A stretch of DNA of 64,000 nt from Macrostomum lignano. Lineage: Eukaryota. Numbering within the stretch: the first letter of the stretch is position 1; each line of letters opens with the position of its first letter. Shown here piece by piece: positions 1-45,120 of the stretch. Below the pieces are notes generated by a model. It worked only from the letters and a program-made list of their open reading frames with translations. It made no database searches and was not told the DNA's origin. The stretch is taken from NCBI GenBank assembly GCA_002269645.1, contig NIVC01000558.1, positions 310,001 to 374,000 on the forward strand, given 5' to 3'. A program made the translations under genes and the position numbers.

Positions 1-1432
1 ATCTCCCTTCAGCTGAAAGCAGTCAGTTCCGATCTGTCCCTTGATCCACTCCAGCGACTCGATGCCCTGATGCTGAGCGGCCAAATGGACGGCCGTGTCA
101 CCTCTAGAGTCAGGAACTGTGAGACAGTCGCTGCCGAGCTCCTTCACCAGCCACTTCAGATTTGAATTGTCAGACTTCTCAGCAGCAATGTGAAATGCTG
201 TTCTATCCAACAATCCCTTCAGCCGAAAGCAGTCAGTTCCGATCTGTCTCTTGATCCACTCCAGCGACTCGATGCCCTGAAGCCAAGCAGCCAAATGGAC
301 GGCCGTGTAACCGTCTTTGTCAGGAACTGTGAGACAGTCGCTGCCGAGCTCCTTCACCAGCCACTTCAGATTTGAATTGTCAGACTTCTCAGCAGCAAAG
401 TGAAATGCCGTTTTATCCAACCATCCCTTCAGCCGAAAGCAGTCAGCTCCGATCTGTCTCTTGATCCACTCCAGCGACTCGATGCCCTGATGCTCAGCGG
501 CCAAATGGACGGCCGTGTCACCGAGTATGTCAGGAACTGTGAGACAGTCGCTGCCGAGCTCCTTCACCAGCCACTTCAGATTTGAATTGTCAGACTTCTT
601 AGCAGCAAAGTGAAATGCTGTTCTATCCAATAATCCCTTCAGCCGAAAGCAGTCAGTTCCGATCTGTCCCTTGATCCACTCCAGCGACTCGATGCCCTGA
701 TGCTGAGCGGCCAAATGGACGGCCGTGGTACCGTATTTGTCAGGAACTGTGAGACAGTCGCTGCCGAGCTCCTTCACCAGCCACTTCAGATTTGAATTGT
801 CAGACTTCTTAGCAGCAAAGTGAAATGCTGTTCTATCATCATCTCCCTTCAGCTGAAAGCAGTCAGTTCCGATCTGTCCCTTGATCCACTCCAGCGACTC
901 GATGCCCTGATGCTGAGCGGCCAAATGGACGGCCGTGTCACCTCTAGAGTCAGGAACTGTGAGACAGTCGCTGCCGAGCTCCTTCACCAGCCACTTCAGA
1001 TTTGAATTGTCAGACTTCTTAGCAGCAAAGTGAAATGCTGTTCTATCATCATCTCCCTTCAGCCGAAAGCAGTCAGTTCCGATCTGTCTCTTGATCCACT
1101 CCAGCGACTCGATGCCCTGATGCTCAGCGGCCAAATGGACGGCCGTGTTACCGCATTTGTCAGGAACTGTGAGACAGTCGCTGCCGAGCTCCTTCACCAG
1201 CCACTTCAGATTTGAATTGTCAGACTTCCGAGCAGCAAAGTGAAATGCCGTTCTCTTCCAGAACCCTCCGTTCAGCCGAAAGCAGTCAGTTCCGATCTGT
1301 CTCTTGATCCACTCCAGCGACTCGATGCCCTGATGCTGAGCGGCCAAATGGACGGCCGTGTCACCGACTTTGTCAGGAACTGTGAGACAGTCGCTGCCGA
1401 GCTCCTTCACCAGCCTCTTCAGACAAGAGTTG
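1..1432 (-). repeat. 210-bp coding tandem repeat, about 7 units (one with a 6-bp in-frame insertion)
   Basis: Units start at 1, 211, 421, 631, 841, 1051 and ~1267; by eye they differ by only about 5-15 of 210 bases. Confidence 0.97.
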
Positions 1433-1836
1433 CTTTTTCTGTTCATAGCGGCAAAGTGAGCGACTGTCTGTTTCAATCTATCGACAATTCTCAAGCAGCC
1501 TCTGCCTCCCTTCTCTTTAACCAGCTTCATCCAAGATTCGTCCTGATGCTGGGCAGCCAAGTGCACTGGAGTCTCGTCCCTATCATTTCCAAGTGTCAGA
1601 CAGTCGGGTCCGAATCTGTCAATCAGCAGCTCCAGGCACGACGAGCTCACCGGCTTGCAGGCCACGTGGTGGGCCAGCGGCATTTTGCGAAGCTCTTCAA
1701 AGGGATAGTCTTGCTTGTCGAACCCGCCCACCTCCAGCTCGATGTTGCTGCCGACCTCACCGCACAGTCGCTGCAGCTGCTCGCTGTCTCCAGCCTCCAG
1801 CGCCGCTCTCAGCTTCCGCTCCATCTCCGTTGCCAT
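1..1836 (-). CDS. Ankyrin-repeat protein, intronless, 3'-partial (runs off window start); N-cap plus divergent ANKs, then about seven 70-aa double-ankyrin modules
   Basis: Manual translation from GCC-ATG-G at 1836 (in-frame TGA upstream at 1908-1906): MATEMERKLRAALEAGDSEQLQRL...DETPVHLAAQHQ...DxxGxTAVHLAAQHQGIESLEWIK...xxDRTAFHFAAxKSDNSNLKWLVKELGSDCLTVP; no stop down to base 1; T-x-x-H-L/F-A-A ankyrin motif every 35 aa. Confidence 0.92.
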   Translation of the reverse strand, partial: MATEMERKLRAALEAGDSEQLQRLCGEVGSNIELEVGGFDKQDYPFEELRKMPLAHHVACKPVSSSCLELLIDRFGPDCLTLGNDRDETPVHLAAQHQDESWMKLVKEKGGRGCLRIVDRLKQTVAHFAAMNRKSNSCLKRLVKELGSDCLTVPDKVGDTAVHLAAQHQGIESLEWIKRQIGTDCFRLNGGFWKRTAFHFAARKSDNSNLKWLVKELGSDCLTVPDKCGNTAVHLAAEHQGIESLEWIKRQIGTDCFRLKGDDDRTAFHFAAKKSDNSNLKWLVKELGSDCLTVPDSRGDTAVHLAAQHQGIESLEWIKGQIGTDCFQLKGDDDRTAFHFAAKKSDNSNLKWLVKELGSDCLTVPDKYGTTAVHLAAQHQGIESLEWIKGQIGTDCFRLKGLLDRTAFHFAAKKSDNSNLKWLVKELGSDCLTVPDILGDTAVHLAAEHQGIESLEWIKRQIGADCFRLKGWLDKTAFHFAAEKSDNSNLKWLVKELGSDCLTVPDKDGYTAVHLAAWLQGIESLEWIKRQIGTDCFRLKGLLDRTAFHIAAEKSDNSNLKWLVKELGSDCLTVPDSRGDTAVHLAAQHQGIESLEWIKGQIGTDCFQLKGD

Positions 1837-2446
1837 GGCTACACGGCTTCTCCTAGCAGCGCTTCTCTGCCGATCTGCTGTCTGCCGCAGCTGTTCCACA
1901 CGGCTTCAAACTGAGTGCTTTGCTCTTCTTCAAGCGAATTCGCCTGCCAGCTCAGCAGCAGCAGCAAAAGTCCCGCTGTCACGGACTGAAATCTCTGAGC
2001 TCTCCCTGTGCAGAGAAATTTGTTTAAATGGACTGAGGCCGATTCTCTTCTCTGACCCAGCGGCTGTGTTTGAGGCCTGATTGGGTGCCAGGGGGCCCGG
2101 CAGCTGCTCTGCTCAGCGGGGTGAGAGATGCAGGAGCAGTGAGATGCTGCGAGCTCTGCTGAGTTAAACAATGAGAGCTGACTGTGGCTGCGTGCTCGGC
2201 ATAGCAAGTGCATTGCCAGTGGGCAGGGGTGAAGGGGCGGCAGCTGAGACACGAGGGGAGAGAGATGGAGAGGGGAGAGAGGGCAGGGCTGAGGCCTGGA
2301 AACCAAGCGGACCTCTCTGACGATTTTCAATTTAGTTTGCAATTGTATGGCAAATATTTTGCAGAAAAATGCTTATAACTGAGGATTTTCTGTTGCTGAA
2401 GTCGAAATAGATGGAGAATGGTCGTTTGGGTTTGCCAGCGACACTT

Positions 2447-3624: not shown

Positions 3625-3928
3625 GTTGTAGCCCAGTGGTTAGAGCGTCGGACTCACGACTTAAAGGTCGGGGGTTCGATTCCCGATCCCACTCGGAACA
3701 ATTTGTGTCGTTGAGCAAGACACTTAACTCTGCACATTTCTTCAGTTCACCCAGCTGTGAAATGGGTGCCAGCATTAGCTGGGGTAATTGAGGGTGTGCG
3801 TGGCGACCCCCCAGTCCTTGGACTGAACAGCCGTACGCAGCCTTCAGATGCACTGCGCAATAGCTGCGGCTGAGCTGTCGGTTGCACATCTGGCCCAACT
3901 GGGGCAGGTGTAATCAATTATTATTATT
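3625..3928 (+). mobile_element. tRNA-derived SINE with CORE-like central domain, full length, in intron 1 of the neuropeptide gene
   Basis: A box TAGCCCAGTGG, B box GGTTCGATTCC, TGTGTCGTTGAGCAAGACACTTAAC...CAGCTGTGAAATGGG resembling the CORE domain, (ATT)n tail, possible TSD ATACTG. Confidence 0.85.
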
Positions 3929-4098
3929 ATACTGCTGTACACTCTGAGTGTGTACCTGTGTGCTCAGGTGTCCGTGGAATGGCATTGACTGCTGGACTTC
4001 TTGCTGACGGCTGTGGTTATTAAAGCCCCCCCTTCTGATGAGTTGCCTGTTTGGCTTCAAATTTCTGAAGATTTTAAACGTGGCTGCCTGCGACTCAC

Positions 4099-4267
4099 CA
4101 GTCTCATCAGCTTGCATCGACGCCAATTCAAACTCGTCTATCGAGCGTTTCTTCTTGCCGCCTGGCGCACAGTTTTCCATGAAACAGGCGCCGCAGCAAT
4201 GCAACAGGTATGCCAGGCACAGAAGAGTGAGAAGCCTGCGTTGAGCTGTTGTCGTCTTGTAGGTCAT
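4099..4267 (-). CDS. Vasopressin/oxytocin-family precursor, exon 1 (signal peptide, CFMENCAPG-GKKKR, linker)
   Basis: MTYKTTTAQRRLLTLLCLAYLLHCCGA-CFMENCAPG-GKKKR-SIDEF...ET; donor G|GTGAGT at 4098 (phase 1); pyrimidine-rich acceptor just upstream of the ATG implies a 5'UTR intron. Confidence 0.88.
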
Positions 4268-5117
4268 TGTTAGTTTCTGTAAAATAGAAAGAGAAGTATT
4301 CGATGGTAGCTGATACTATCGAAAAAAGCTACAGAACTCTTTACGGTTCCTGGATATTGAAAAGCTGGTAGTCAACTTACCGGTTGAAGAAGATACGAGG
4401 CAGCGCAGCTTGGAAGAAAAAGTTCTGATGAGCTCGAAAGGTTGCCTGTTCAATATTGGCTATTCATTTTTCGCGCTTCTTGCTCTGTCTTTTATAGACA
4501 TTTCCAAATCCGTGAGTAGATGGCTTGGGCTTTGGAGGCGGCGATTTTGTCCCCAATTGGAATAATTATTCACAACATTTGAAGCTCAAGTTTCATTTGC
4601 CCAAATTTTAAATTGGTCCATTTTTCTCATCAGCAATTATAAAATTTTGTGAAAGAAGAAAATTGTCGAAACTTTTTGCCCAATTACTGACAGGGCTCTC
4701 GGTAAAAGAAAAAACGCCTCTTACAAAGCCCCTAAAAAATTATTAGAATAACAGTTTTCGCCTTTCATCTCACATGTTTATACAATTTATACTTTCGTTG
4801 TAATTTCTCGTAAATGAAAACTGTCGTGTTTTTTATTCTCGTTTGTTTTTTTTTTTCTTGCCGTACCAAGAACTTTTGTATCGGATAGAAGATATGGACT
4901 GGAAAGCAGTTGTTAGTTAGTCTTGAGGGATGCTTCTGGGTGTAGTGTCGCAAAGTCGCTTTTCGCTGAACCCCTGAGCACGCATACGGATTATTTACTC
5001 ATACAAAGTGTACGAGTGGCTTTGAACTTTTCAACAATAAAGGATTTCAATAACACGCGGAAAAACCTATAAAAACTCTGGAGCAGAGTCGGTCGTGTTA
5101 GCGCTCTGTCGATTTGT

Positions 5118-5990
5118 CATGAATCTCTTAAAGATATAGATCAAGATCATGAATCTCTTGAAGATATAGATCAAGATCATAAATCTCTTGAAGATATAGA
5201 TCAAGATCATGAATCTCTTGAAGATATAGATCAAGATCATGAATCTCTTGAAGATATAGATCAAGATCATGAATCTCTTGAAGATATAGATCAAGATCAT
5301 GAATCTCTTGAAGATATAGATCAAGATCATGAATCTCTTAAAGATATAGATCAAGATCATGAATCTCTTAAAGATATAGATCAGGATCATGAATCTCTTA
5401 AAGATATAGATCAAGATCATGAATCTCTTAAAGATATAGATCAAGATCATGAATCTCTTGAAGATATTGATCAAGATCATGAATCTCTTAAAGATATAGA
5501 TCAAGATCATGAATCTCTTAAAGATATAGATCAAGATCATGAATCTCTTCAAGATATAGATCAATATCATGAATCTCTTAAAGATATAGATCAAGATCAT
5601 GAATCTCTTGAAGATATAGATCAAGATCATGAATCTCTTGAAGATATAGATCAATATCATGAATCTCTTCAAGATATAGATCAATATCATGAATCTCTTA
5701 AAGATATAGATCAAGATCATGAATCTCTTGAAGATATAGATCAAGATCATGAATCTCTTGAAGATATAGATCAAGATCATGAATCTCTTGAAGATATAGA
5801 TCAATATCATGAATCTCTTAAAGATATAGATCAAGATCATGAATCTCTTAAAGATATAGATCAAGATCATGAATCTCTTGAAGATATAGATCAAGATCAT
5901 GAATCTCTTGAAGATATAGATCAAGATCATGAATCTCTTGAAGATATAGATCAATATCATGAATCTCTTAAAGATATAGATCAATATAAT
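5118..5990. repeat. 30-bp minisatellite (GAATCTCTTGAAGATATAGATCAAGATCAT)
   Basis: About 29 near-perfect tandem copies. Confidence 0.97.
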
Positions 5991-7078
5991 TAATCTCTAG
6001 AAGATAAATCAAGACGTCAATTTGGTAAGTGCATGGACCTCTTAAAAGTTCAGGTTTTAACTAGATACATTGACATGTAAATGTTTTCTAGGGGTAACTT
6101 TCATGGCATCTCAGAAGTCCACCCATGGGACTTGACGTATTGGCGATTCCCCCCAGGAGGCGTTTATGGTTGAGAGGTCAAATACAAGCGTATTCTATGG
6201 TAAAACTGATGTTAACACTGTCCCTAACCTTTTTGTTTGATATGACGCTTCTTTTATGTTAGAGGTGGCATGACATGGTCCATGAACATAAGCAGTGATT
6301 TAGTTGACTCTTTGTCACAGCTTTTCCTTAACAGAACTGTGACACTTTTGAGAGCATGGTCTTATTGTCGTTTGCTGCTTCACTAGCACTGCTGATTATT
6401 TTGCTAATACATTTGCGTGCTAATTTTGTTTTGAATGCTTTCATGTTCTCAACTTCAATCAATATACTAGTATTATATTTATATTCTGACTAAGACATTC
6501 TCCGCAGTGAGTTTAGGGTGGGTGCAAAATTTGCTTTTGTAGAGTTTTCATTTTTATTGCTAGAGATTATAATATAGTTATATAAACATTAGTGTAAACA
6601 ACATTAAATTTAAAGAAAATCAATTTTTTTTCGATTTCCAGTGCCCACTAGCTAAAGTGCCTCAATAATTATAATTAACTACGCAATTATTTAAACAAAA
6701 AAGAAGCAATTTTTCTATTGCTCCATCTTCTATGCCGAAATTTTTCTGCAAAATCACAGCTTGCCGATTGCCGATTTGCGACTTGTTTTTATCGCTTCAA
6801 AGGATTTCCTCCAGAATCTTCATAATTTTAACTCCAATTAAATCTACTCACCACGGTCTTCTTCCTAATTCCTAATGCCTGGCGTTTGAAAATTTTGCGC
6901 GGAGTCTTTTCTAATTTGGCGCAATCGTTTTCCTCATCGGAGAAATTACGGTAATCATTTCTAAGAAAAGAAAAATAAATTTCTCAATCTTCACCCACAA
7001 TTTTCGAGAATACATTAATTCTCACTTTTTTCATTTATTTGCGAAGGATGCGAAGCTTATTGCCACTTGGGGGTTGTC

Positions 7079-7279
7079 GAGGATGACAACGCGCCGCCAC
7101 ACCGAGCCGATGCTGTTAGTCAACCGAAAGAGCAGCTACAGCTGCGCACTCTGCGCTGGCCTTCCCGGTCACCAGGCATGAATCCCATCGAGCATGTCTG
7201 AGACTTCTTAAAACGCAGAATTCGAAAAGAGAATCCACCACAGAATGTTGCGGAGCTGCGTCATGCCATTGAAAACGGA
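7079..7279 (+). pseudogene. Tc1-family (DD34E) transposase C-terminal remnant
   Basis: EDDNAPPHRA...RWPSRSPGMNPIEHV*DFLKRRI...NVAELRHAI; 34 residues between D and E; conserved W replaced by TGA. Confidence 0.8.
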
Positions 7280-8077
7280 TCCCAGATTTCAGATCCCAGA
7301 TCTCAGATCTCAGATCTCAGATCTCAGATCCCAGATCTCAGATCCCAGATCTCAGATCCCAGATCTCAGATCCCAGATCTCAGATCCCAGATCTCAGATC
7401 CCAGATCTCAGATCCCAGATCTCAGATCCCAGATCTCAGATCCCAGATCTCAGATCCCAGATCTCAGATCCCAGATCTCAGATCCCAGATCTCAGATCCC
7501 AGATCTCAGATCCAAGATCTCAGATCCCAGATCTCAGATCCCAGATCTCAGATCCCAGATCTCAGATCCCAGATCTCAGATCCCAGATCTCAGATCCCAG
7601 ATCTCAGATCCCAGATCTCAGATCCCAGATCTCAGATCCCAGATCTCAGATCCCAGATCTCAGATCCCAGATCTCAGATCCCAGATCTCAGATCCCAGAT
7701 CTCAGATCCCAGATCTCAGATCCCAGATCTCAGATCCCAGATCTCAGATCCCAGATCTCAGATCCCAGATCTCAGATCCCAGATCTCAGATCCCAGATCT
7801 CAGATCCCAGATCTCAGATCCCAGATCTCAGATCCCAGATCTCAGATCCCAGATCTCAGATCCCAGATCTCAGATCCCAGATCTCAGATCCCAGATCTCA
7901 GATCCCAGATCTCAGATCCCAGATCTCAGATCCCAGATCTCAGATCCCAGATCTCAGATCCCAGATCTCAGATCCCAGATCTCAGATCCCAGATCTCAGA
8001 TCCCAGATCTCAGATCCCAGATCTCAGATCCCAGATCTCAGATCCCAGATCTCAGATCCCAGATCTCAGATCCCAGA
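7278..8077. repeat. 14-bp minisatellite (CCCAGATCTCAGAT), two 7-bp half-units
   Basis: About 57 near-perfect tandem copies. Confidence 0.97.
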
Positions 8078-8212
8078 TGGCGTGGCGCAGGTGAGCTGCT
8101 TCGTTTCGTTAATTATCTGTCACAAACCTTGCAGATCTGGATTTGAAATGCCGATTAAGAGTTCTAATTTAACTAGTCCTGAAGTTCAGCCCCAAAAAGA
8201 TTTAAAATATAA

Positions 8213-8465
8213 AATCCCAATCCAGAATCCTGAAAGTCAAAATCTCAAATCTCAAATCCCAAATTCCACATCCAAAATCCCAAATCCCAAATCCCAAGTC
8301 CCAAATCCCAAATCTCAAATCCCCTATCCCAAATCCCAAATCCCAAGTCCCAAATCTCAATCCCAAATCGTAAATCACAAATCTCTAATCCCAAGTCCAA
8401 ATCCCAAACCCAAATCCCAAATCCAAAATCTCAAGTCCCACATCTCAAATCCTAAATCCCAAATT
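8213..8465. repeat. Degenerate 7-bp repeat (CCAAATC/TCAAATC)
   Basis: Tandem AAATCCC-type heptamers. Confidence 0.85.
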
Positions 8466-8469
8466 CCGA

Positions 8470-8745
8470 TTCGGATTCACGACGATTCCCGATCCCACTG
8501 GACCAATTTGTGTCTTTGAGCAAGACACTTAGCTCTGCACATTGCTTCAGTTCCCCAGCTGTAAAATGGGTGCCAGCATTAGCTGGGGTAATTGAGGGTT
8601 GTGTTGTGTGGCGACCACCAGTCCTTCGACCGAACAGCCGTACGCAGCCTTCAGATGCGCCGCACAATAGCTGCGGCTGAGCTGTCTGTTAAGCACATGC
8701 ATCTGGCCCAACTTGGGGCAGGTGTAATAAATAATAACAGTAATC
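8470..8745 (+). mobile_element. Second copy of the CORE-like SINE, 5'-truncated
   Basis: Aligns by eye to 3650-3925 including the core and the GCAGGTGTAATAAATAATAA tail; tRNA head partly deleted. Confidence 0.85.
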
Positions 8746-13893: not shown

Positions 13894-14886
13894 TTACCCC
13901 TCTGCCGCATCGCTGCTCTGACGATGCAGTTGGGCGGGATGCGGCTTGCCGCAGCCAGGCAGCTTGCAGACGTGCCGGTACCTGCAGCTGGACCGTTGAC
14001 AGCCAGCTGTTGAGTTGAAGCTCAGGCAAACGGGCGCCTGCGGCTGCGAGATACCTTCAGATTGCGTAGAGCGTTCAGGTGTCGATGGTACAGCTTCGGG
14101 GGTTCGCACCCCCACTGATGCAATTCTGACTCTGCCATCAGCTTCCTGTAGTCTTCATCAAACTCCCACACAACGTTTGGGCTGTAGTTGGCGTCCAGGA
14201 GTTCGCCCATCTTCTGGGAGTACAGCAGGTAGCCTCTCAGCTCGCTGGTGTTCACAGACCCGTCGTCATTCAGAAAGATGAGCGAGCCGTCGTCAATCAG
14301 GCGCTGTAGGATTTGAGCATTGCCAGAGATCTATTGGCCGGTGGAAATCTTGCTTAGGTTTGGCGACTGCTTTTTGAACACCAGGTTGCCGTTCTCCACG
14401 CAGGCGGTCAGGCTCTCGCTTGACTGATTGGCGTTGGGCTTGACAAAGTCTCGGATCAGGAGGCTTTCTGGCTGACTGACCGCTCTCTACACCTGCGCAA
14501 GATAAAAGGGCCTCATGCACACCAGCAGGAAAAGCTGTGGGCTCACCTTGAGAGGAGGCAGCAGTCTGATTCCCGTTGAGCTCGCGCTGCAGTTGAGCAC
14601 GGCGCCGCGTCAGCGCCTTGATTTCCAGCTCTTCGACCTCCTTCCGCAGAGCCGCCAGGTCGCCAGCCGCGCCCCCCGTCGCCTCTTGCCCGCCTGTTGA
14701 CTGGTCGTCGATGATTCCTGCATCAAGAGTCGAGACGGAGCTGTCAGAGTCGGCTGCAGGAGCTTCAGACTGCAAGTGGCGGCATAGCCGTTCGTAGAGC
14801 TGTTGTTTGCAGCCTGTTTTTGGGAGACCGCGCTTGGCCAGCTCTGCTCTGAGCTGTCTAGCTGTTAGTGCATGTGCACTTTCCAT
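13894..14886 (-). pseudogene. Ngaro gag-like ORF (N-terminal SAP-like motif, C-terminal Cys/His finger), frameshifted
   Basis: LTARQLRAELAKRGLPKTGCKQQLYERL; VVWEFDEDYRKLMAE; CLSFNSTAGCQRSSCRYRHVCKLPGCGKPH; spread over three frames with an internal stop. Confidence 0.72.
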
Positions 14887-15369
14887 GGTTGTTGACAAAT
14901 AAAAAAATTGCAAATAAAAAATCTGAGCAATTGCACACAGACGGTCAAGCCAGAAAATACTGGGTTTAAGAACCACCGGCACGCGGCGGAGGGGGGGCGG
15001 AGGAGAGGTGGGCGAAGGGGGTGGTAGGGTTAACACACTTTACACTGAGGCCCACGGAGCAGGCCTAGTGTAAAGTAGGCATTAATGCGCGCGGCTTTTT
15101 TATTGGCCGGCTGGGAAAAACAGAAAACCGAAATTACCGATCGCGCACTGTACGCAGGCTTTACAAATGTACGCAGATGATTAAAATTCTTTGGGCACTA
15201 CTTTAAGACGACGTGAGAGTACAAAACCAACAACATTATAGATTGGTACCGGATGTCAAAACGGCCCTTGGCGGGGCTACTTAAACTGACAACGTTACAG
15301 TTTAGCGATGAGCGTCTAGCCATATTGGTCAATCGCTCACGTACATGTAAGTTCTTCCAATATTTTTTC

Positions 15370-22200: not shown

Positions 22201-23626
22201 AGCAATTGTACTTAATGGTTTTGACAAAAATAGTTATAGCATATAGCATAAACAAACCTATTTGATAGGAATAGTTTCAGTGCACACAGTGCAAGCAAAC
22301 TTTTTATAGGATAATTTAGAACGTGTTTTTATATATAGTCATTTTGTCTGACTTGACTGCGTTTTATTTGCTAGTTAACAAAATGACTTTTAATTGTTGT
22401 ATAATTTTGTTTATTGTAAAATGTCACCAAATCATTATTAGAGTTCTATTATTATAGTTATGAATATAGCTATGGAAAGTTTTGGAAACAGAGGTTTTTT
22501 AGCAAAGCATATGGATATTGTTATGGGAACACATAGTTCTTATATCTAGATCCTGTATCTAATAATACCAATTAACTAAAACTTAAACAAGCATTGGAAC
22601 TATTGACTTGATTGGGATAGGTTATTGGAAATAAATGAATGCTGCCAGTTTGAAAGTTGGAAGAACATTTGAGTCCCTAAAATTTTCAATGCCTTGTTTA
22701 CATTGTGGTTGCATGGTAGGAGCTAAAGTTTATATAAATCACTTTCAGGGGAGCTTTATAAGTCCCTAGGGTTAGGGACTATGATGGGATTAGGACTGTG
22801 GGAGCTAAATTTAAGAAGATTGAAACTACATGCATATTGAGATTAAAATGAGGGGGTTAAGGTTAAGATAAATGTTTTTACTTTCAATATAAAAGTTAAA
22901 ATAAGCACGTTGTGGCTGGGATGGTAAGGGCTTAAGTTAAGATGAATGAAGCCAATGGGGAAGCCACCTAGCATTTGCCACTATCAAAGGCTAGATTGCA
23001 AAGGAGTCTTCTTGGAAACCAATTGATGAGTTAGGCCATCACCCTCACAGAATATTTTGCATAGTAGTAATTGGAAATTTTGTTAATTGAGTTACTTGAA
23101 CAATATATGAAAATATTTCAGGAGAGAGATGAGAGGTAGAAAAGAGGGAGTCAAAGAAGGGGAAAATAAAAGATGATCTTGTCATTTGCCCTTGGCCTGC
23201 AGCTTGAGCAATATTTATTGTTCAAGCTATTGTTCAAGCTAGATATTTGCATAGCAGAAGGCATCTGACCAGATAACATGGCTAGTCAGTTGAAGTTGTT
23301 GCCTGCATAGCAGGTCAGGCCACATCAGGCGCACCCTTGTGTAAAGCACAGCTAATAAAGTATATTGAGTCTTATTAACCATTATAAGGTGCATAAAATT
23401 CTTCTAAAAACTGTAAGCAAACAAGTTGCTATTTACCATAATTAAAAACATTTACATTAGTAAGTATATGTTTGTACGTATATTAAACCCTTTTGAAGTT
23501 GTATACTTTAGAGAAATAATATGGAAACCTTTATATATTTATCCTTAGAAATACTTATAATTGTTTAATATTCAATAGTTAAATGGCAAAGAATGCAACC
23601 AACTAACACACAACACAAAAATTTAG

Positions 23627-24174
23627 AGCTGCTTGCTGGCGCAGACCTGAACGATCTCACAGTGAAGAAGGTGCGCAAAGAGCTTGAGCAGCGACTCGGA
23701 GTCAGCCTAGCAGATAGGAAGACTGATATTGAACAGGCAATCGAGGCTGTACTGACAGCCCGCGGCAACAGTGCTAGCAACCAAGATGAAGCTAAAAGCA
23801 GCAATAGCGGCAATGAAGATAAACATGATGATGATGATGACACAGACTCCAGCTTATCCGAACTAGAAGACGCTGCTCCATCAAGGAAATCGGCAAAACT
23901 GTCTTCAGCTTTATCCGCTGCAGCAGCTTCGTCTTCTGCTTCTGCAAAAAAGAAGCAGAAACCTCAGACAGACGAAGAATTGGCCAGGGAGTTGCACCTG
24001 AAAGAGAATGGCTTAACAACCCGTCGGCGTAGGACTGTCGGCTCAAGCGGTGATTCTTCCGCTACTAAAAGCAGAAAGACGCCAAGAAAATCTGGCGGCG
24101 GATTCTCCAAGCCGTGCGCGTTGAGTCCCGCATTGGCCAGCGTTGTTGGCTGCGACTCCATGCCCAGACAGCAG
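23627..24174 (+). CDS. DEK-C/SWIB protein (UAF30/Tri1/spp27-like), exon 2
   Basis: TTTAG| LLAGADLNDLTVKKVRKELEQRLGVSLADRKTDIEQAIEAVL (DEK-C); acidic/basic linker; GGGFSKPCALSPALASVVGCDSMPRQQ|GTGGGT (SWIB start). Confidence 0.88.
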
Positions 24175-24344
24175 GTGGGTGCAAGCATTGTGGCAGCCAC
24201 ATTTAGAGACGGGTGTTTTGGCGAGGCATTCCAAATTAGCACTCTAAAAGGCACTCTATTGTTGTCACTGTATGGGCATTCCACTTTGTTACTTAAATGC
24301 ATATCTAAATTTTATTATAAAGTCTCTAAACTTTATAGTGACTC

Positions 24345-24780
24345 TACTTTGACAAACCTTTCACTCCAAACGTCACAAACCTGTCACTCTAAAAGTCACG
24401 AATCTGTCACTCTAAACGTCGAAAACCTGTCACTCGGAAAAGTCACAAACCTGTCAGTCTAAGTCGCAAACCTGCCACTCTTAAAGTCACAGACCTGTCA
24501 CTCTAAATTTCACAGACCTGTCACTGTAAAAGTCTCAAACCTGTCACTCCAAATGCCATAAACCTGTCACTAAAAGTCACAGACCTGTCACTCTAAATTT
24601 CACAGACCTGGCACTAAAAGTCACAGACCTGCCACTCTAAAAGTCACAGACCTGTCACTCTAAAAGTCATGGACCTGTCACTTGAAAAGTCACAAATCTG
24701 TCACGGATCTGTCTCTGTCACTCTGTCACTCTGTCTGTCACAAATCTGTCACGGATCTGTCAGTCCTAAAGTCACATTGC
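24345..24780. repeat. About 22-bp minisatellite (AAAGTCACAGACCTGTCACTCT) in SWIB gene intron 2
   Basis: Imperfect tandem copies. Confidence 0.9.
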
Positions 24781-32584: not shown

Positions 32585-35500
32585 AAAGATAAATAAAGGG
32601 ATAGAGAGAGCAGTAGAGGAAGGGAGAGAGAGGGGTAGAGGGGTAGAAGAAGGGAGAGAGCTGAGAAAGAGGGGTAGAGGAAGGGAGAGAGTGGAGAAAG
32701 AGGAGTAGAGGAAGGGAGAGAGTGGAGAAAGAGGAGTAGAGGAAGGGAGAGAGTGGAGAAAGAGGAGTAGAGGAAGGGAGAGAGAGGAGAGAGCGGTAGA
32801 GGAAGGGAGAGAGCGGAGAGAGGGGTAGAGGAAGGGAGAGAGCGGAGAAAGAGGGGTAGAGGAAGGGAGAGAGTGGAGAAAGAGGAGTAGAGGAAGGGAG
32901 AGAGTGGAGAAAGAGTGGTAGAAGTAAGGAAAGAGCGGAGAGGGGTAGGTGTATGGAGAGAGTGGAGAGAGGGGTAGAGGAAGGGAGAGAGCGGAGAAAG
33001 AGGGGTAGAGGAAGGGAGAGAGTGGAGAAAGAGGAGTAGAGGAAGGGAGAGAGTGGAGAAAGAGTGGTAGAAGTAAGGAAAGAGCGGAGAGGGGTAGGTG
33101 TATGGAGAGAGTGGAGAGAGGGGTAGAGGAAGGGAGAGAGCGGAGAAAGAGGGGTAGAGGAAGGGAGAGAGTGGAGAAAGAGTGGTAGAAGTAAGGAAAG
33201 AGCGGAGAGGGGTAGGTGTAGGGAGAGAGTGGAGAGAGAGAGCGGTAGAGGAAGGGAGAGAGCGGAGAGAGGTGTAGAGGAAGGGAGAGAGCGGAGAAAG
33301 AGGGGTAGAGGAAGGGAGAGAGTGGAGAAAGAGGAGTAGAGGAAGGGAGAGAGTGGAGAAAGAGGAGTAGAGGAAGGGAGAGAGTGGAGAAAGAGGAGTA
33401 GAGGAAGGGAGAGAGTGGAGAAAGAGGAGTAGAGGAAGGGAGAGAGTGGAGAAAGAGGGGTAGAGGAAGGGAGAGAGCGGAGAAAGAGGGGTAGAGGAAG
33501 GGAGAGAGTGGAGAAAGAGTGGTAGAAGTAAGGAAAGAGCGGAGAGGGGTAGGTGTAGGGAGAGAGTGGAGAGAGAGAGCGGTAGAGGAAGGGAGAGAGC
33601 GGAGAGAGCGGTAGAGGAAGGGAGAGAGCGGAGAGAGGTGTAGAGGAAGGGAGAGAGCGGAGAAAGAGGGGTAGAGGAAGGGAGAGAGTGGAGAAAGAGG
33701 AGTAGAGGAAGGGAGAGAGTGGAGAAAGAGTGGTAGAAGTAAGGAAAGAGCGGAGAGGGGTAGGTGTATGGAGAGAGTGGAGAGAGGGGTAGAGGAAGGG
33801 AGAGAGCGGAGAAAGAGGGGTAGAGGAAGGGAGAGAGTGGAGAAAGAGGAGTAGAGGAAGGGAGAGAGTGGAGAAAGAGTGGTAGAAGTAAGGAAAGAGC
33901 GGAGAGGGGTAGGTGTAGGGAGAGAGTGGAGAGAGAGAGCGGTAGAGGAAGGGAGAGAGCGGAGAGAGGTGTAGAGGAAGGGAGAGAGCGGAGAAAGAGG
34001 GGTAGAGGAAGGGAGAGAGTGGAGAAAGAGGAGTAGAGGAAGGGAGAGAGTGGAGAAAGAGGAGTAGAGGAAGGGAGAGAGTGGAGAAAGAGGAGTAGAG
34101 GAAGGGAGAGAGTGGAGAAAGAGGAGTAGAGGAAGGGAGAGAGTGGAGAAAGAGGAGTAGAGGAAGGGAGAGAGTGGAGAAAGAGGAGTAGAGGAAGGGA
34201 GAGAGTGGAGAAAGAGGAGTAGAGGAAGGAAGAGAGTGGAGAAAGAGGAGTAGAGGAAGGGAGAGAGTGGAGAAAGAGGAGTAGAGGAAGGGAGAGAGAG
34301 GAGAGAGCGGTAGAGGAAGGGAGAGAGCGGAAAGAGGGGTAGAGGAAGGGAGAGAGCGGAGAAAGAGGGGTAGAGGAAGGGAGAGAGTGGAGAAAGAGGA
34401 GTAGAGGAAGGGAGAGAGTGGAGAAAGAGTGGTAGAAGTAAGGAAAGAGCGGAGAGGGGTAGGTGTATGGAGAGAGTGGAGAGAGGGGTAGAGGAAGGGA
34501 GAGAGCGGAGAAGAGGGGTAGAGGAAGGGAGAGAGCGGAGAAAGGGGGTAGAGGAAGGGAGAGAGTGGAGAAAGAGGAGTAGAGGAAGGGAGAGAGTGGA
34601 GAAAGAGGAGTAGAGGAAGGGAGAGAGTGGAGAAAGAGGAGTAGAGGAAGGGAGAGAGTGGAGAAAGAGGAGTAGAGGAAGGGAGAGAGTGGAGAAAGAG
34701 GAGTAGAGGAAGGGAGAGAGTGGAGAAAGAGGAGTAGAGGAAGGGAGAGAGTGGAGAAAGAGGAGTAGAGGAAGGGAGAGAGAGGAGAGAGGGGTAGAGG
34801 AAGGGAGAGAGCGGAGAAAGAGGAGTAGAGGAAGGGAGAGAGTGGAGAAAGAGGAGTAGAGGAAGGGAGAGAGTGGAGAAAGAGTGGTAGAAGTAAGGAA
34901 AGAGCGGAGAGGGGTAGGTGTAGGGAGAGAGTGGAGAGAGAGAGCGGTAGAGGAAGGGAGAGAGCGGAGAGAGGTGTAGAGGAAGGGAGAGAGCGGAGAA
35001 AGGGGGGTAGAGGAAGGGAGAGAGTGGAGAAAGAGGAGTAGAGGAAGGGAGAAAGTGGAGAAAGAGGGGTAGAGGAAGGGAGAGAGAGGAGAGAGGGGTA
35101 GAGGAAGGGAGAGAGAGGAGAGAGGGGTAGAGGAAGGGAGAGAGCGGAGAAAGGGGGGTAGAGGAAGGGAGAGAGTGGAGAAAGAGGAGTAGAGGAAGGG
35201 AGAGAGAGGAGAGAGGGTAGAGGAAGGGAGAGAGTGGAGAAAGAGTGGTAGAAGTAAGGAAAGAGCGGAGAGGGGTAGGTGTAGGGAGAGAGTTGAGAGA
35301 GAGAGCGGTAGAGGAAGGGAGAGAGCGGAGAGAGGTGTAGAGGAAGGGAGAGAGCGGAGAAAGAGGGGTAGAGGAAGGGAGAGAGTGGAGAAAGAGGAGT
35401 AGAGGAAGGGAGAGAGTGGAGAAAGAGGGGTAGAGGAAGGGAGAGAGAGGAGAGAGGGGTAGAGGAAGGGAGAGAGAGGAGAGAGGGGTAGAGGAAGGGA

Positions 35501-35830
35501 GAGAGCGGAGAAAGGGGGTAGAGGAAGGGAGAGAGTGGAGAAAGAGGAGTAGAGGAAGGGAGAGAGTGGAGAAAGAGGAGTAGAGGAAGGGAGAGAGTGG
35601 AGAAAGAGGAGTAGAGGAAGGGAGAGAGTGGAGAAAGAGGAGTAGAGGAAGGGAGAGAGTGGAGAAAGAGGAGTAGAGGAAGGGAGAGAGTGGAGAAAGA
35701 GGAGTAGAGGAAGGGAGAGAGTGGAGAAAGAGGAGTAGAGGAAGGGAGAGAGTGGAGAAAGAGGAGTAGAGGAAGGGAGAGAGTGGAGAAAGAGTGGTAG
35801 AAGTAAGGATAGAGCGGAGAGAGAGAAGGG
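32585..35830. repeat. About 3.2-kb polypurine satellite (about 30-bp unit GTAGAGGAAGGGAGAGAGTGGAGAAAGAGGA with variant modules)
   Basis: Plus strand almost entirely G/A. Confidence 0.97.
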
Positions 35831-36304
35831 TAGAGGAAAGGGAGAGCGGAGAGAGAGAAGGAAAATGAGTGAGCGCCAGCGGAGACAGGGGTGGCTCTTT
35901 GGAGAGAGGCTAAAGGAGGGAAAGGGTGAGGCATTTGACTGTAAAATCTCATTGTCAAACCATATTGCAGTGTTGTACAATTTTTTACTACCCTTTCAAT
36001 CTTAAATTCAGGAGCTCACTGACTGGAATTCCAGAATCCATCAAGCTGTTAAACGGAAGGCATTGAGCTTGAGCATGACATTGAGCTGTCGTTATACATT
36101 GAAACTCAGTCCTAACACTGCTATATACTCTAAGAGAAATTTATTGGGTAAAATGACAGCAGAACACAAGGTTGAAGTATCAGAACCATTCGAAATTACA
36201 AGGGATGCATAACTTTATTTGGCTATTGAATTTTAATTGAAAGCCTACCTGGATCTTATAATTGAGTTCTGAGTATTCTTTTAATATTATGTTTATTGAA
36301 ATAC

Positions 36305-37660: not shown

Positions 37661-38726
37661 CTAGGAGACAATCAAGCTTGCATAAATTCCCATGATTAAA
37701 ACAAGCCCTAACAGAAATTCGACAAAGCATAGCTACCATGCAGACAAGACTTCCCTCATTCATGCTGGCTAGTTTGTAATCCAAAAATAACCCAGGTGCA
37801 AAGGTTCGCAGACAGCTTTGGCCCTCACCAAGGCAATAGAGATTTCGTGGAGGTTTCGAACGCCACTTGCCCGCCCACCCTCCAATCATCTTAAAGGAAC
37901 TAGCCGTCAGGATACCGCCTAAAACTGCTGGATGCGGCTGAACAGACTTTCCAGCTGGGCAGTACAAGAATTCGAATCCGTCCTAGTCACTCTGTACTTT
38001 TACTCTCTCCTTCCATCGTTCCCTTGCCGGCAGCCAATGGGAGTTTACGGTATGATTGACTGGAAGATAACCACCAGGCTTACTAAGGTTGGCCACGTTA
38101 TTCGTAGCCCCTAGCAACCAGAAACCGAAGTACCTACTCAAACATACAGTATATAACTCCCCTAGATACAGTGCAAGCCTCATCTTGTTTACTCGACAAA
38201 CTTGAGACCCCACAGTCAACTCATTTTTTAGATTGATTGATTGATTGCCTAAGCCAGTTACCAAGCCTGACCGAAGTTTGAGTAGCTTAAGTGGAAAAAT
38301 TGAATGCCGCCCTGATTAGGAAGCGATCAAGTGAAACGAATTAGCTGTGTAGGGCTGTAAGGATTGAACGCGCGAACACTTCATGCTCGTGGCTACTCTA
38401 AAGTACTCAACTATGAAAACTGGACGACAGTCTCCTTGAGAGTAGATCGCGTCAATTTGTATTTGGGGTTGACCGACCGAGCGATAAGAACCAACCATCC
38501 AAGTAGTCCGCAGACTCGCATGCATGCATGAGCACTGCGGTACAGAGTCTGGAGCAACTAAGACCCCTGGTTAAGATTCCCAATTTGTGCATGAAAATTA
38601 AATTGTCCAGGGGGGTTTCACAGAGTCAAGCGGAATCGAATATTTATTGTTCCTATAATGCTTGAAGACACCTGTAACAAAGCCGGATACAGGTAAGCAT
38701 TGCAACCATGGCAACGGTAGGCTCAC

Positions 38727-39623
38727 CCGGTAGTACTGCCAGGCCATTTCTCGCTCCGCTAGCATAGCAGCCGTCTCCTCATCAGTGAGCACATTGTCGC
38801 CCAGCTTCACCTGCCAACGCAGCTGATTTTGCCTCTCGTCGTAGACATTCTGCGTCACCTCCTGCTCAAACACAGCCTCCTTCATCTGGCGCGAAGCTGA
38901 CAGACCGGTTGCAGAGTTCTCCAGCGCGTCTCTGAGCTCCTTCATCTTGAGCCGGCCCTGCTTCTGGTTGAGCACCTGGGCAACAGCGAAGGGACTGTTA
39001 AGGTGCGGCGGAATTCGCAGACCGTTGCGTTCCACGGGTTGACGAACTCGCGGCTGTGGCAGAGACAACTGTTGCTGCTTTGAGGCGGCTCCTTGTGTTT
39101 TTTGTTGCTGCTGCTGCTTCTGCAGGGACTCTTGGCTGGCTCGCAGTTTGTTCCTTCGCGCACGTTCCAACGGTGAGAAAGCCCTGGGGTCCAGGCTCTG
39201 CTGCAGGGCCGCCGGGTCGCTGGGGTCCTCAAGGCCGTACATTTGGTACACCTGGTCGCGCTCCATTCCCGGAGCCGAGTGGCCCATCAGGTGGCAGGTG
39301 AGCGGGGCGAAGTTGAACTGCGACACCCGCAGCTCCATGGTCATCTCGGCGGTGACGAAGTCGATCGGGGCGAAGGTCACAGCAATGTCAACCTCGCCAT
39401 CAGCTGGAATCGAACCGCTGAGCGGCTCCACGGTGAACACCGGATTAGGATGGGTAATCTTGATCTCGAATTCGAACTCAACCGGAGCTCGTGAACGTAG
39501 CGGAATGATCTGAGTGCGCCGATAACCAACCGGTATTGGCGGGAATTTCACCTGCTTGGGGAACTCGTTGTAGCCCAGGACTGGGTAGGCGTGGATCGGG
39601 ATGATCAGATTGTTCTTTTCGTC
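38727..39623 (-). CDS. CFAP221: CFAP221/PCDP1 exon 3
   Basis: LIIPIHAYPV...FTVEPLSGSIPADG...SQFN...PFAVAQVLNQKQGRLKMKELR...RQMKEAVFEQ...LRWQVKLG; GCAG| acceptor and |GTGAGC donor, 299 codons. Confidence 0.92.
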
Positions 39624-39799
39624 CTGCGAGAGGTTGTTCGGTGCAAAATGGTTCATAAGTACACATCGGAACACAGGCTGTCTATAGTTATCTACACTTG
39701 AAAAAATCCGTCCCTACGGACATGGCTGGCCATAGACTATCGCTGTCCTTTTTAACACTCAGCAACACGAAGCACGAAGCCTGATCCTGCAGAATGCTA

Positions 39800-43408: not shown

Positions 43409-45120
43409 GAAACATCCTGTCCTTCCGCATTCTGGGCTACAACAAGTCGCGCAGAAATCAGTCCAGCACTTTCTATTTACGAGCTTTGGCCGTGGCGGAC
43501 TCAGGCGCTCTGATCTTGAACTCGCTGCTGATGGCGCAGATGATGATGCTACGACCAGCGATACACCTGCACCCATTGAGCTTATTGTCCATCATGCTGA
43601 ACTCGTACCCGATGTGCAATGTGAGGATGTACTTGTCGCGTTCGACCACACTGATAGCGGTGTACATTATCGTGCTGTTTAGCATCGAACGAGCTCTGGT
43701 AGTGATCAATCCGTTTCGCTGGATGAGATTCTTCACTTTGCGCAAAGCAAAATTAGCGGTGGTTGGTTTGACGCTCATCAGCTACAGCATCTGTATTCCT
43801 GCAATGTTCAGCTTCAACAAGGAGAGCTTCAACTACCCGAAGCGTCTGTACAATGTGACCACGAATAAGACCATTGTGGCTCCGACACTCCTGGCTATGG
43901 CGGACTGCTCGCGTCTTAGACGGGAGGGCGTCAACGGAACTGGCAGCCTGGTGATGGAGGAGCCAATGCCGATGCTGGGCATTCTCGCTCAGCTGGCGTT
44001 AAACAAGGAGAGCATCCGGATAGAGGGCAATCTTTCCACTGTGCACCGGATGCTGCTCAACCAGAGCAAACAGGAACGCGGTCTGATGAGACACATCGGA
44101 CTGGAATGCCAGAGCATCGCCGATTGCCGCATCAATTTTCCAATTTTCAAGCCTTTCATCATGTTTTACAATATTTCCATATCCCTGATCCCATTTATCA
44201 TCACTGGAGTTTGCAACTTGATCATTCTAGTGTCTCTTCGTAACGTTGAGACAAAAAACCTGCGCAAGTCAAAGCCCAATGAAGAGGTTCAGGATCGGCA
44301 GGTGACAAAAAAGTTAATCATCGTCTCGACGGCTTTCGTGGTGCTGAGCTTTCCGTTGGCTCTGTTTCACTTAATTACCGGGATAATGCGAGGCAGTTAC
44401 TGCAGCACCTTTTGGTCGAACTACCTGACTATAGGTCTGACCCTGAGCTCCTCCAACCACGCCGTCAATTTCATCATCTACTGCATCAGCGAGGAGCAAT
44501 TTAGACGGCTGGTTGTGTCCGTCCTGATGTGCAAGCGGCACCGCCTCACCAGGCTGCTCAGCTACATCAACGAGCCGAGGAATCGAGGCGCCTGTGGCGG
44601 CGGCAGGGCCGGAGGCTACGGCGCGAAAGGGCGCAGCAGACGAGGCAACGTTGGCACCACCAACACTGGCCCGGCGACTGCAACCACCGGAACTGGCTGC
44701 CGGAAGATGTCCACCCCGTACACAAACATCACTAACTACAGCACAAGCCAGAGTCAGAGTCAGTGTCCGGACCAGTCGGAGTTGTCAGTAACGGATGTCT
44801 TGGTGCACCAGCCGGTCGAGAGAACACCAGCGCCACCGCCGCCGCCGTCAACGCCACCGCAAGAGCCTCCGCCTCAGGAGACGTCAAAGACGAACGAATC
44901 GCCCCAGCAACGTCAAAAGACGCTCTCATTTGCGAAGCGACTCAAAGCCAGACGGCGTAACGATGAAATTGTAGCAGACGATGCTGTTGAGATCCCGCAC
45001 GACTTCAAGAACTGCAGCCTGGTGCGGGACGACTGGGCGAGCGAGCTGTTTGCCGACGATGTTGAAGACAGTCGGTTGAGGGCCATAATGGCACGCTGGA
45101 GTGAAATCACACCAGAGTGA
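43409..45120 (+). CDS. Class A (rhodopsin-like) peptide-type GPCR, main exon
   Basis: TTCCAG| GNILSF (TM1 end), YLRALAVAD (TM2), FSIERALVVINPF (ERY-like), LIPFII (TM5), LSFPLA (TM6), NHAVNFIIY (NPxxY variant); long ECL2 and long C-tail; 606 aa when joined. Confidence 0.92.

Follow-up and report, generated by a model that had tools for sequence, protein, structure and literature searches.

The flatworm Macrostomum lignano is the source of the 64,000-nucleotide stretch of DNA described here (assembly GCA_002269645.1, contig NIVC01000558.1, positions 310,001 to 374,000 of the forward strand), which is referred to below as the window. On its minus strand, positions 1–1836 are the first 612 codons of exon 1 of the gene BOX15_Mlig011736g1: the ATG lies at position 1836 and the frame is open down to position 1. 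A preliminary description, made from the letters of the window alone, had noted an open reading frame (ORF) without a stop and had assigned it to an invertebrate; both statements hold. The sequence past the window edge was taken from the same contig (locus L001; 100% identical over the first 11,836 window bases), in which the exon-1 ORF runs for 1153 codons and ends exactly at a canonical GTGAGT splice donor. It encodes an N-terminal cap (residues 1–141), then 13 modules closed by a C-terminal capping module, and the first part of a Pro/Ala/Ser-rich linker; the exons downstream, outside the window and intact in L001, encode the linker and a complete protein kinase domain. The reconstructed product has about 1471 residues and about 30 ankyrin repeats, with the whole ankyrin array in a single exon. 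Since the full product has no hydrophobic segment (maximum Kyte–Doolittle hydropathy 1.25, without a transmembrane segment or signal peptide), it is predicted to be cytosolic. Judged from its sequence, the window end is the 5' part of the single-exon ankyrin array of a cytosolic ankyrin-array kinase. The features of this end, with the variable codons of each module, are as follows.

1837–1909, minus strand: 5' leader immediately preceding the start codon; it stays in frame and has no stop over 23 codons.
1414–1836, minus strand: N-terminal cap, residues 1–141; two capping helices, a β-hairpin insertion and three diverged ankyrin repeats in an AlphaFold2 (AF2) model.
1201–1413, minus strand: module M1, a double ankyrin repeat of 71 residues, from translation and codon alignment; first finger 1360–1371 (KVGD), helix 1A end 1333–1338 (QH), second finger 1252–1272 (NGGFWKR, one extra codon), helix 1B 1228–1239 (FAAR).
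991–1200, minus strand: module M2, coordinates verified by translation; first finger 1147–1158 (KCGN), helix 1A end 1120–1125 (EH), second finger 1042–1059 (KGDDDR), helix 1B 1018–1029 (FAAK).
781–990, minus strand: module M3; first finger 937–948 (SRGD), helix 1A end 910–915 (QH), second finger 832–849 (KGDDDR), helix 1B 808–819 (FAAK).
571–780, minus strand: module M4; first finger 727–738 (KYGT), helix 1A end 700–705 (QH), second finger 622–639 (KGLLDR), helix 1B 598–609 (FAAK).
361–570, minus strand: module M5, verified by translation; first finger 517–528 (ILGD), helix 1A end 490–495 (EH), second finger 412–429 (KGWLDK), helix 1B 388–399 (FAAE).
151–360, minus strand: module M6; first finger 307–318 (KDGY), helix 1A end 280–285 (WL), second finger 202–219 (KGLLDR), helix 1B 178–189 (IAAE).
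1–150, minus strand: module M7, truncated by the window edge after 50 codons; first finger 97–108 (SRGD), helix 1A end 70–75 (QH), start of the second finger 1–9 (KGD).

The ORFs of loci L001–L005 and L007, which are all the paralogs examined in this respect, begin 70 nt ahead of the annotated ATG. In Pfam, the 612-codon ORF matches ankyrin families only (Ank_2, 2.8e-52; Ank_4, 2.6e-52), and these matches, together with a predicted helix–loop–helix/β-hairpin solenoid, identify it as a member of the ankyrin repeat superfamily. Tandem Repeats Finder reports a period of 210 nt with 6.7 copies and 93% matches over window positions 4–1423, a 42-nt module anchor occurs seven times with zero mismatches (0 expected by chance), and cutting the protein at LVKELGSDCLTVPD yields six complete modules of 70 or 71 residues and a seventh truncated by the window edge. 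The near-identical 70-residue double-ankyrin modules behind a capping helix that had been proposed at the outset are therefore real, with two capping helices in the AF2 model. The residues that had been listed for them are likewise exact, both in the first finger (KV/D, KC/N, SR/D, KY/T, IL/D, KD/Y, SR/D) and in the second (GGFWKR, DDDR, DDDR, LLDR, WLDK, LLDR), as are QH, EH or WL after LAA and R, K or E after FAA. Of the 70 codons of the module, 17 are variable among the seven copies in the window, and at 15 of them the amino acid is altered; purely synonymous variation is confined to codons 24 and 54, with TTA/TTG as an additional case at codon 50, in agreement with an earlier count of about three synonymous differences.

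The annotated gene gives a very different picture. The GenBank model of BOX15_Mlig011736g1 (835 residues) contains five of the 13 genomic modules, the third of them chimeric, and skips eight modules (L001 10001–16022). The Mlig_3_7 annotation was made from short-read transcript assemblies mapped onto the genome (PMC5730564), and the collapsed model is explained by such mapping over near-identical repeats; an annotation built from transcripts also implies that the gene is transcribed. Other gene models of the family are probably truncated or split too, and many kinase-only fragments are found among the matches of the kinase search described below. Transcript-based annotation collapses such arrays (835 versus about 1471 residues), and similar families are probably under-counted in other genomes.

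The AF2 model covers the 612 window residues and was built with 17 paralogs as the alignment (predicted local distance difference test, pLDDT, 91.3; predicted template-modelling score, pTM, 0.79). It is a regular ankyrin solenoid behind two capping helices and a small hairpin insertion, with helices at residues 4–15 and 18–27, strands at 33–36 and 50–53 and ankyrin helix pairs from residue 54. Within the module, the finger loops correspond to columns 12–19 and 47–55 and contain the variable columns 15, 16, 18 and 48–54, whereas the inner helices correspond to columns 20–27 and 56–62, and their C-terminal ends hold the variable columns 26, 27 and 62. In the outer helices only column 38 varies (R/G). 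This mapping uses the secondary structure of the model and the D-x-x-G-x-T...H-x-A-A register, not three-dimensional coordinates. On the model, both β-hairpin fingers and the C-terminal end of each inner helix carry the hypervariable residues, and together these parts form the canonical concave ankyrin groove; a check of this kind had been suggested beforehand, and the variable sites are not scattered over the predicted fold. In Foldseek the model matches NOMPC, AnkB (4rlv) and ankyrin-1 at a probability of 1.00, and also TRPA1, latrotoxin and Espin (template-modelling score 0.76); several of these long solenoids bind extended peptides along their inner groove. Designed ankyrin repeat proteins (DARPins) are among both the sequence and the structure matches, although natural NOMPC and Espin are nearer in sequence.

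DARPin libraries randomise positions 2, 3, 5, 13, 14 and 33 of each repeat, and the design of Binz et al. in 2003 is said to read DxxGxTPLHLAAxxGHLEIVEVLLKzGADVNA. These positions were mapped through the D-x-x-G-x-T...H-x-A-A register onto both repeats of the module, giving a set of 12 columns (13, 15, 16, 18, 26 and 27, and 48, 50, 52, 54, 62 and 63) that was fixed before variability was examined. The codon alignment comprised 34 modules from eight genes at seven loci. The seven amino-acid columns of highest entropy (50, 16, 52, 62, 15, 26 and 18) all fall within the set (hypergeometric p = 6.6e-7), and none of 20,000 random 12-column sets attained its nonsynonymous diversity. The claim that the variable codons are those randomised in DARPins thus stands in its main part and fails in two details: position 33 is not variable, and the second finger differs. 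Positions 2, 3, 5 and 13 vary in both repeats, and position 14 varies weakly in repeat A and is invariant in repeat B. In the second finger there is additional variability at positions 1 and 4, which are fixed in the DARPin libraries, together with variation in length.

The diversity at these columns is of the kind expected from diversifying selection. Across the 34 modules, nonsynonymous diversity (piN) is 0.319 at the set, while the remaining columns have a synonymous diversity (piS) of 0.053 and a piN of 0.035; the ratio of piN at the set to piS in the framework is 6.0 (bootstrap 95% confidence interval 3.0–11.1). Within the gene of the window, piN at the set is 0.318 and piS in the framework 0.0186; the ratio is then about 17, which bears out the earlier suggestion that the protein is diversifying. 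Minimum-event counts give 29 nonsynonymous changes at the set versus three synonymous changes in the framework for this gene (binomial p = 1.5e-8), and 52 versus 24 for all 34 modules (p = 4.7e-6). Of the 210 nucleotide positions of the module, 34 are variable in this gene, namely 21 of the 36 in the set and 13 of the 174 elsewhere (Fisher p = 4e-11), distributed over codon positions 1, 2 and 3 as 13:12:9. Differing codon pairs in the set are separated by two or three nucleotides in 245 cases and by one in 194, as opposed to 22 and 263 in the framework. Each module presents about ten hypervariable residues on a framework that is nearly invariant, synonymous sites included. The mean pairwise identity of the 13 modules is 93.1% in DNA and 87.8% in protein over 910 residues (95% for the framework alone), which is above the threshold for high internal conservation (at least 85% repeat identity over at least 100 residues; PMC4986451). 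The local dN/dS at the variable codons is about 2 (1.9–2.0) on only about six synonymous sites, and multi-step codon paths inflate the local dS; since this value is unreliable standing alone, framework dS was used as the neutral reference.

The modules also carry the traces of extensive reshuffling. The complete M7, as read in L001, matches M3 at every one of the 210 nt. The B half of M2 is identical to the B halves of M3 and M7, and its A half lies 9 nt from that of M3; in M13, outside the window, the A half is that of M3 with one difference and the B half is that of M5 with none, and the module differs from M3 and from M5 by 9 nt each in the other half. The four-gamete test is failed by 61 of 120 informative site pairs, with a minimum number of recombination events (Rm) of at least seven within the 210-nt unit. 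The modules are, to judge from these comparisons, recombinant mosaics. The identity of M3 and M7 had prompted a search for a higher-order repeat of 840 nt, which was rejected as M4 and M8 differ at 12 nt.

Exchange extends beyond the single locus. The SRGD cassette (TCT AGA GGT GAC) is found in six genes, and identical multi-codon cassettes for KGDDDR, KGWLDK and NGGFWKR likewise recur on other contigs. Module number ranges from 2 to 13 among young paralogs, whose N-terminal caps differ at a proportion of synonymous sites (pS) of 0.04–0.2, and from 3 to 13 among paralogs at a pS of about 0.04. In a sister subfamily with LVNECGTDCLSVRD modules, locus L008 ends in a kinase and L009 in a caspase; between the two, pS is 0.218 in the N-terminal cap and 0.578 in the C-terminal cap but 0.051 in the internal modules, the same as within one gene. 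This homogenisation is the clearest evidence of exchange between loci, and together with the mosaics and the shared cassettes it describes concerted evolution, with shuffling within loci and exchange between them. The variable columns of the sister subfamily (61, 58, 50, 51, 16, 27 and 18) again lie in the fingers and the inner helix, and DARPin position 10 is variable as well. Not all members of the family are homogenised: the modules of P0005, for example, have diverged to 56% identity.

At locus L005 (P0007), subfamily-A modules are joined to a kinase only 38–42% identical to the usual one of L001–L004 and L006, and the same kinase type is found in the divergent member P0018. The occurrence of this second kinase type on subfamily-A modules suggests that effectors were swapped or that distant members of the family exchanged arrays.

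The C-terminal domain of the annotated product (P0001) matches Pkinase (PF00069) at 1.1e-55, and in an alignment to STK25 the motifs GRGGFG, VAVK, HRDIKSSN, DFG and APE are all present; with all its catalytic motifs, the kinase is apparently active. Its best matches among solved kinases are STK25, SLK, MST4, ASK1, MEKK2 and PAK (E values of 1e-36 to 1e-29), which suggests an STE-like Ser/Thr kinase closest to STE20/MAP3K at about 30% identity. The search with this domain gave no orthologue outside M. lignano, every match above 37% identity being from this species. Between paralogs the ratio of nonsynonymous to synonymous differences (pN/pS) of the kinase domain is 0.19–0.70 with a mean of 0.49, and by this measure the domain is under purifying selection. 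The genes are therefore held to be functional, a view to which the intact frame of 1153 codons and the transcript-built annotation also contribute.

A search of the rest of the ORF for NACHT/NB-ARC, TIR, death or transmembrane domains, as had been proposed, found none of them and the STE-like kinase instead. The annotated full-length product and five paralogs contain no NACHT, NB-ARC, TIR, death or CARD domain (Pfam matches to Ank, Pkinase or Peptidase_C14 only), and the further M. lignano relatives P0205, P0207 and P0213 contain no NACHT domain, whereas the insect relatives do. Without a central NACHT or NB-ARC domain, the gene of the window is not an NLR (NOD-like receptor) or STAND protein in the usual definition. 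In the paralogs P0020 and P0024 the ankyrin array is fused to a Peptidase_C14 caspase rather than to a kinase as in the window. A second ankyrin–caspase copy lies at L009 1–1498, and M. lignano is a free-living species.

The family is large, and the gene of the window is, as had been supposed, one member of a repertoire, which counts at least 25 M. lignano paralogs. The first search returned 29 M. lignano proteins at E < 1e-60, most of them ankyrin–kinase and some ankyrin–caspase fusions. Their genes often stand in tandem: loci L007, L008 and L009 each have two or three per 22–24 kb, and the contig of the window has at least three; there is no second ankyrin–kinase family member within the 64-kb window. 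In a HMMER scan of 1.84 billion representative proteins, every source-checked match of at least 42% identity was from M. lignano, and the kinase and caspase domains are likewise without close relatives elsewhere; other Macrostomum species are probably not represented in the databases searched, and the family is not claimed to be species-specific. The nearest relatives of the array outside Macrostomum are uncharacterised insect STAND proteins at 32–36% identity (E values of about 1e-99 to 1e-107). One of them is a caspase–NACHT–ANK protein of the mayfly Neocloeon triangulifer (P0209, LOC132192631), which has the same 70-residue double-ankyrin module with a KWLV-E-G motif; another is a NACHT–ANK protein of the sawfly Neodiprion virginianus (P0211, LOC124304452), whose array consists of about 15 nearly identical 34-residue repeats. 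A literature search gave no description of this ankyrin–kinase family or of hypervariable ankyrin arrays in animals.

Taken together, these results indicate diversifying selection on a predicted binding surface, acting alongside concerted evolution and the shuffling of modules, in a lineage-restricted family that has expanded in tandem. We consider it probable that the family is a germline-diversified intracellular recognition system, in which the array feeds the information of a variable sensor to a fused effector. The long solenoid would be a germline-encoded, combinatorially variable sensor of intracellular ligands; its targets would probably be proteins or extended peptides that come from pathogens, other non-self or selfish elements and dock along the groove. 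A bound ligand would release autoinhibition or bring several copies of the protein together, and the fused kinase would then be activated for signalling of the MAP3K/STE20 type, whereas in the caspase paralogs the protease would be activated by induced proximity. Such a logic would be that of an NLR without a nucleotide-binding oligomerisation domain (NOD). A wider reading, possible but offered only tentatively, is that the family represents a new class of animal intracellular immune or non-self receptors, a natural equivalent of a DARPin library in the germline, with a hypervariable, reshuffled ankyrin sensor, no NOD and alternative effectors (two kinase types and a caspase), perhaps derived from a protostome caspase–NACHT–ANK protein by loss of NACHT.

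The closest parallel is found in fungi. In fungal NLR arrays the repeats are more than 85% identical, polymorphic in number and subject to concerted evolution, the concave face is under positive selection, and effectors are swapped (Dyrka 2014, PMC4986451); such highly conserved repeats are rare in Metazoa, at 0.8% (PMC4986451). The flatworm array resembles the ankyrin, tetratricopeptide and WD arrays of these proteins (Podospora HNWD/NWD) in its 87.8% repeat identity and in its hypervariable concave face of inner helices and hairpin loops, and also in a repeat number that varies among paralogs, in shuffling, in inter-locus exchange and in the use of one sensor type with several effectors. The likeness to HNWD that had been drawn at first sight holds, as the flatworm arrays too are strongly conserved internally, shuffle their modules and are homogenised from locus to locus. 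Nevertheless, there are clear differences. The gene of the window has no NACHT or NB-ARC domain, and its effectors, kinase or caspase, are C-terminal where the fungal ones are N-terminal. In addition, the host is an animal, the unit is a double repeat of 70 residues, and the variation in repeat number is known here between paralogs, not alleles.

The insect caspase–NACHT–ANK and NACHT–ANK proteins share the KWLV-E-G motif with the flatworm family; the mayfly protein also has the 70-residue module and a caspase effector, and the sawfly array is homogenised. They differ in having NACHT with the array C-terminal to it, whereas the flatworm array is N-terminal to its effector, and the sawfly repeats show little of the hypervariability of the flatworm modules. 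The ANK-caspases of flatworms form another point of comparison. They are a flatworm-specific fusion of an ankyrin pro-domain with a caspase, at least in the account of Lee et al. 2014 that is cited in PMC11463336, and that 2024 survey calls them unique to parasitic flatworms (PMC11463336). The paralogs P0020 and P0024 share exactly this architecture in a free-living flatworm. The gene of the window instead has a kinase as its fusion partner, and ANK-caspases are not reported to have arrays that are hypervariable and internally conserved; a search with the caspase domain of P0020 for the parasite proteins gave only M. lignano matches above 39% identity and no link to them.

Ankyrin repeats and a kinase also occur on one polypeptide in ILK, TNNI3K, RIPK4/ANKK1 and DAPK1, and in ILK and TNNI3K the ankyrin domain is N-terminal as well; RIPK4 was a weak match in the first search. 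The kinases of these proteins belong to other groups (TKL and CAMK), whereas that of the flatworm gene is nearest to STE20/MAP3K, and their short, diverged ankyrin domains are conserved from one species to another instead of being homogenised and hypervariable. The resemblance to DARPins, in which positions 2, 3, 5, 13 and 14 vary on an otherwise invariant framework, is a resemblance only, as DARPins are synthetic. The flatworm array is natural and has about 30 repeats instead of two or three internal ones, these being 35-residue repeats of two alternating types. Lastly, the variable lymphocyte receptors (VLRs) of lampreys are solenoid repeat receptors too, in which a concave surface is diversified by combining leucine-rich repeat cassettes; VLRs are assembled somatically and are extracellular, whereas all the diversity seen here is in the germline and the protein is predicted to be cytosolic.

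The innate immunity of flatworms is poorly known, and to our knowledge no diversified intracellular receptor family has been described in them. If the proposed recognition function is correct, the fungal route to recognition diversity, by near-identical solenoid repeats with a hypervariable groove and by shuffling, has also arisen in an animal, and it works without the nucleotide-binding switch that is thought to be central to such receptors. The arrays also amount to a natural experiment in which nearly the same positions are randomised as in DARPins, in arrays ten times longer. As M. lignano is amenable to RNA interference and transgenesis, the hypothesis is directly testable.

Several points weigh against a recognition function. 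An immune or non-self role is suggested by analogy, and the selection could come from pathogens, from selfish elements or from an endogenous partner that co-evolves with the array. Classical allorecognition is unlikely because M. lignano is not colonial, and no oligomerisation domain is present in the product to account for activation. On the side of the statistics, the selection test on the whole module is non-significant (p = 0.15), and site-class tests alone were used. The statistics are Nei–Gojobori and parsimony counts on recombining, non-independent repeats rather than a recombination-aware codon model; the excess of nonsynonymous variation at concave-face positions is thus a result of count-based tests, not of a codon-model likelihood ratio. 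Furthermore, pN/pS is fairly high in the framework (0.63 between genes) and in the caps (about 0.8–1.3; for the N-terminal cap between paralogs, pS is 0.097 and pN 0.081), which indicates that the whole family is weakly constrained. Finally, the module count comes from a single PacBio/Canu assembly of one inbred line.

The main rival is a role in reproduction or genomic conflict. The array might be a fast-evolving endogenous interaction module, such as a sperm or germline kinase scaffold shaped by sexual conflict or a selfish killer/antidote-like element, whose groove tracks a partner within M. lignano itself. The selection signature shows diversifying selection, not its agent, and the restriction of the family to one lineage, its tandem expansion and its weak overall constraint would fit such a module; moreover, M. 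lignano is a hermaphrodite, for which rapid evolution of reproduction-related genes is reported (PMC7336406). We nonetheless regard this role as unlikely. Having no signal peptide or transmembrane segment, the protein would not directly contact the extracellular molecules of a mating partner. The gene identifiers were found neither in the full text of the papers searched nor in the germline and neoblast signature tables of M. lignano, a weak negative as these tables are possibly incomplete. The fusion of the same array to a caspase, and nearest foreign relatives of the caspase–NACHT–ANK type, point rather to death or defence signalling.

A neutral origin would make the pattern a by-product of a recently amplified coding minisatellite, with relaxed constraint on exposed loops, or of decaying genes. 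The paralogs are indeed young (pS 0.03–0.2), pN/pS in the caps is near 1 and the whole-module test is the non-significant one given above. However, relaxed constraint cannot raise nonsynonymous diversity 6–17-fold above the synonymous level, nor can it pack 21 of 34 variable nucleotides into 36 of 210 positions. Where variable codons differ, they mostly do so at two or three nucleotides, and the framework hardly varies; the ORFs are intact over 400–1176 codons, with the kinase under purifying selection. The neutral explanation is thus largely refuted, and we give it very little credence.

Still less credible is an artefact of assembly or consensus. A redundant neopolyploid assembly might have joined reads of several paralogs or homeologs into a chimera, of which neither the length nor the mosaic structure would be real. 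Mlig_3_7 is indeed redundant, and its genome was hard to assemble (PMC5730564), M3 and M7 are identical, and the evidence is the assembly itself, not independent reads. The errors of PacBio sequencing are mainly indels, not codon-specific substitutions. Against a chimera stand the 1153-codon frame ending in a canonical donor, the distinctness of 12 of the 13 modules, which makes the path through the array unambiguous, the recurrence of the pattern at eight other loci, and the length of the array, 2.9 kb, which is short for PacBio reads at 130-fold coverage (PMC5730564). A dedicated mutational or somatic diversifier, by targeted hypermutation or VLR-like copying of cassettes from paralogous modules, is the least credible of all, as the extreme concentration of changes, their multi-nucleotide nature and the cassette pool across loci, although compatible with one, are not specific to it, no diversification machinery is evident near the gene (the neighbours being a LINE, a receptor gene and ordinary genes), and the cassettes are fixed in the germline assembly and common to loci, as gene conversion or unequal crossing-over would give.

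The remainder of the window contains the following ordinary metazoan neighbouring genes or exons.

14293–15036, minus strand: SAP domain.
23593–24462, plus strand: DEK_C domain.
38598–39674, minus strand: CFAP65-like Ig domain.
43486–45120, plus strand: rhodopsin-type G-protein-coupled receptor.

An uncalled ORF of 117 residues at 3914–4267 on the minus strand reads MTYKTTTAQRRLLTLLCLAYLLHCCGA-CFMENCAPG-GKKKRS and has no Pfam match. It has a signal-peptide-like start and a Cys1...Cys6 nonapeptide followed by Gly and a basic processing site, as in precursors of the vasopressin/oxytocin type ('platytocin'); M. lignano is reported to possess vasopressin (VP)/vasotocin precursor genes (PMC8896804). 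About 18 kb further on, on the same strand, there is a called gene that contains a neurophysin (Hormone_5) domain (from L001 25851). If the nonapeptide ORF and the neurophysin gene belong together, the ankyrin–kinase gene would be nested in their intron. At 48902–52641 on the plus strand, adjacent ORFs of 762 and 484 residues with endonuclease/exonuclease/phosphatase, reverse transcriptase and RNase H domains are apparently an intact non-LTR (long interspersed nuclear element, LINE) retrotransposon.

The M. lignano genome is reported to be very rich in tandem repeats (PMC5730564), and so is the region around the ankyrin–kinase gene. Three such repeats lie just upstream of it. A 30-nt minisatellite has 30 copies at 5117–6014. 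A 20-nt repeat has 18.6 copies at 2448–2831, and a 14-nt repeat with 57 copies, 99% identical, lies at 7278–8078 inside an ORF at 7245–8519. Further along, at 32613–35857, a purine-rich 31-nt satellite, GTAGAGGAAGGGAGAGAGTGGAGAAAGAGGG, is present in about 107 copies with an extremely asymmetric strand composition (GC skew 0.75–0.92) and gives rise to spurious minus-strand ORFs of about 1140 residues.

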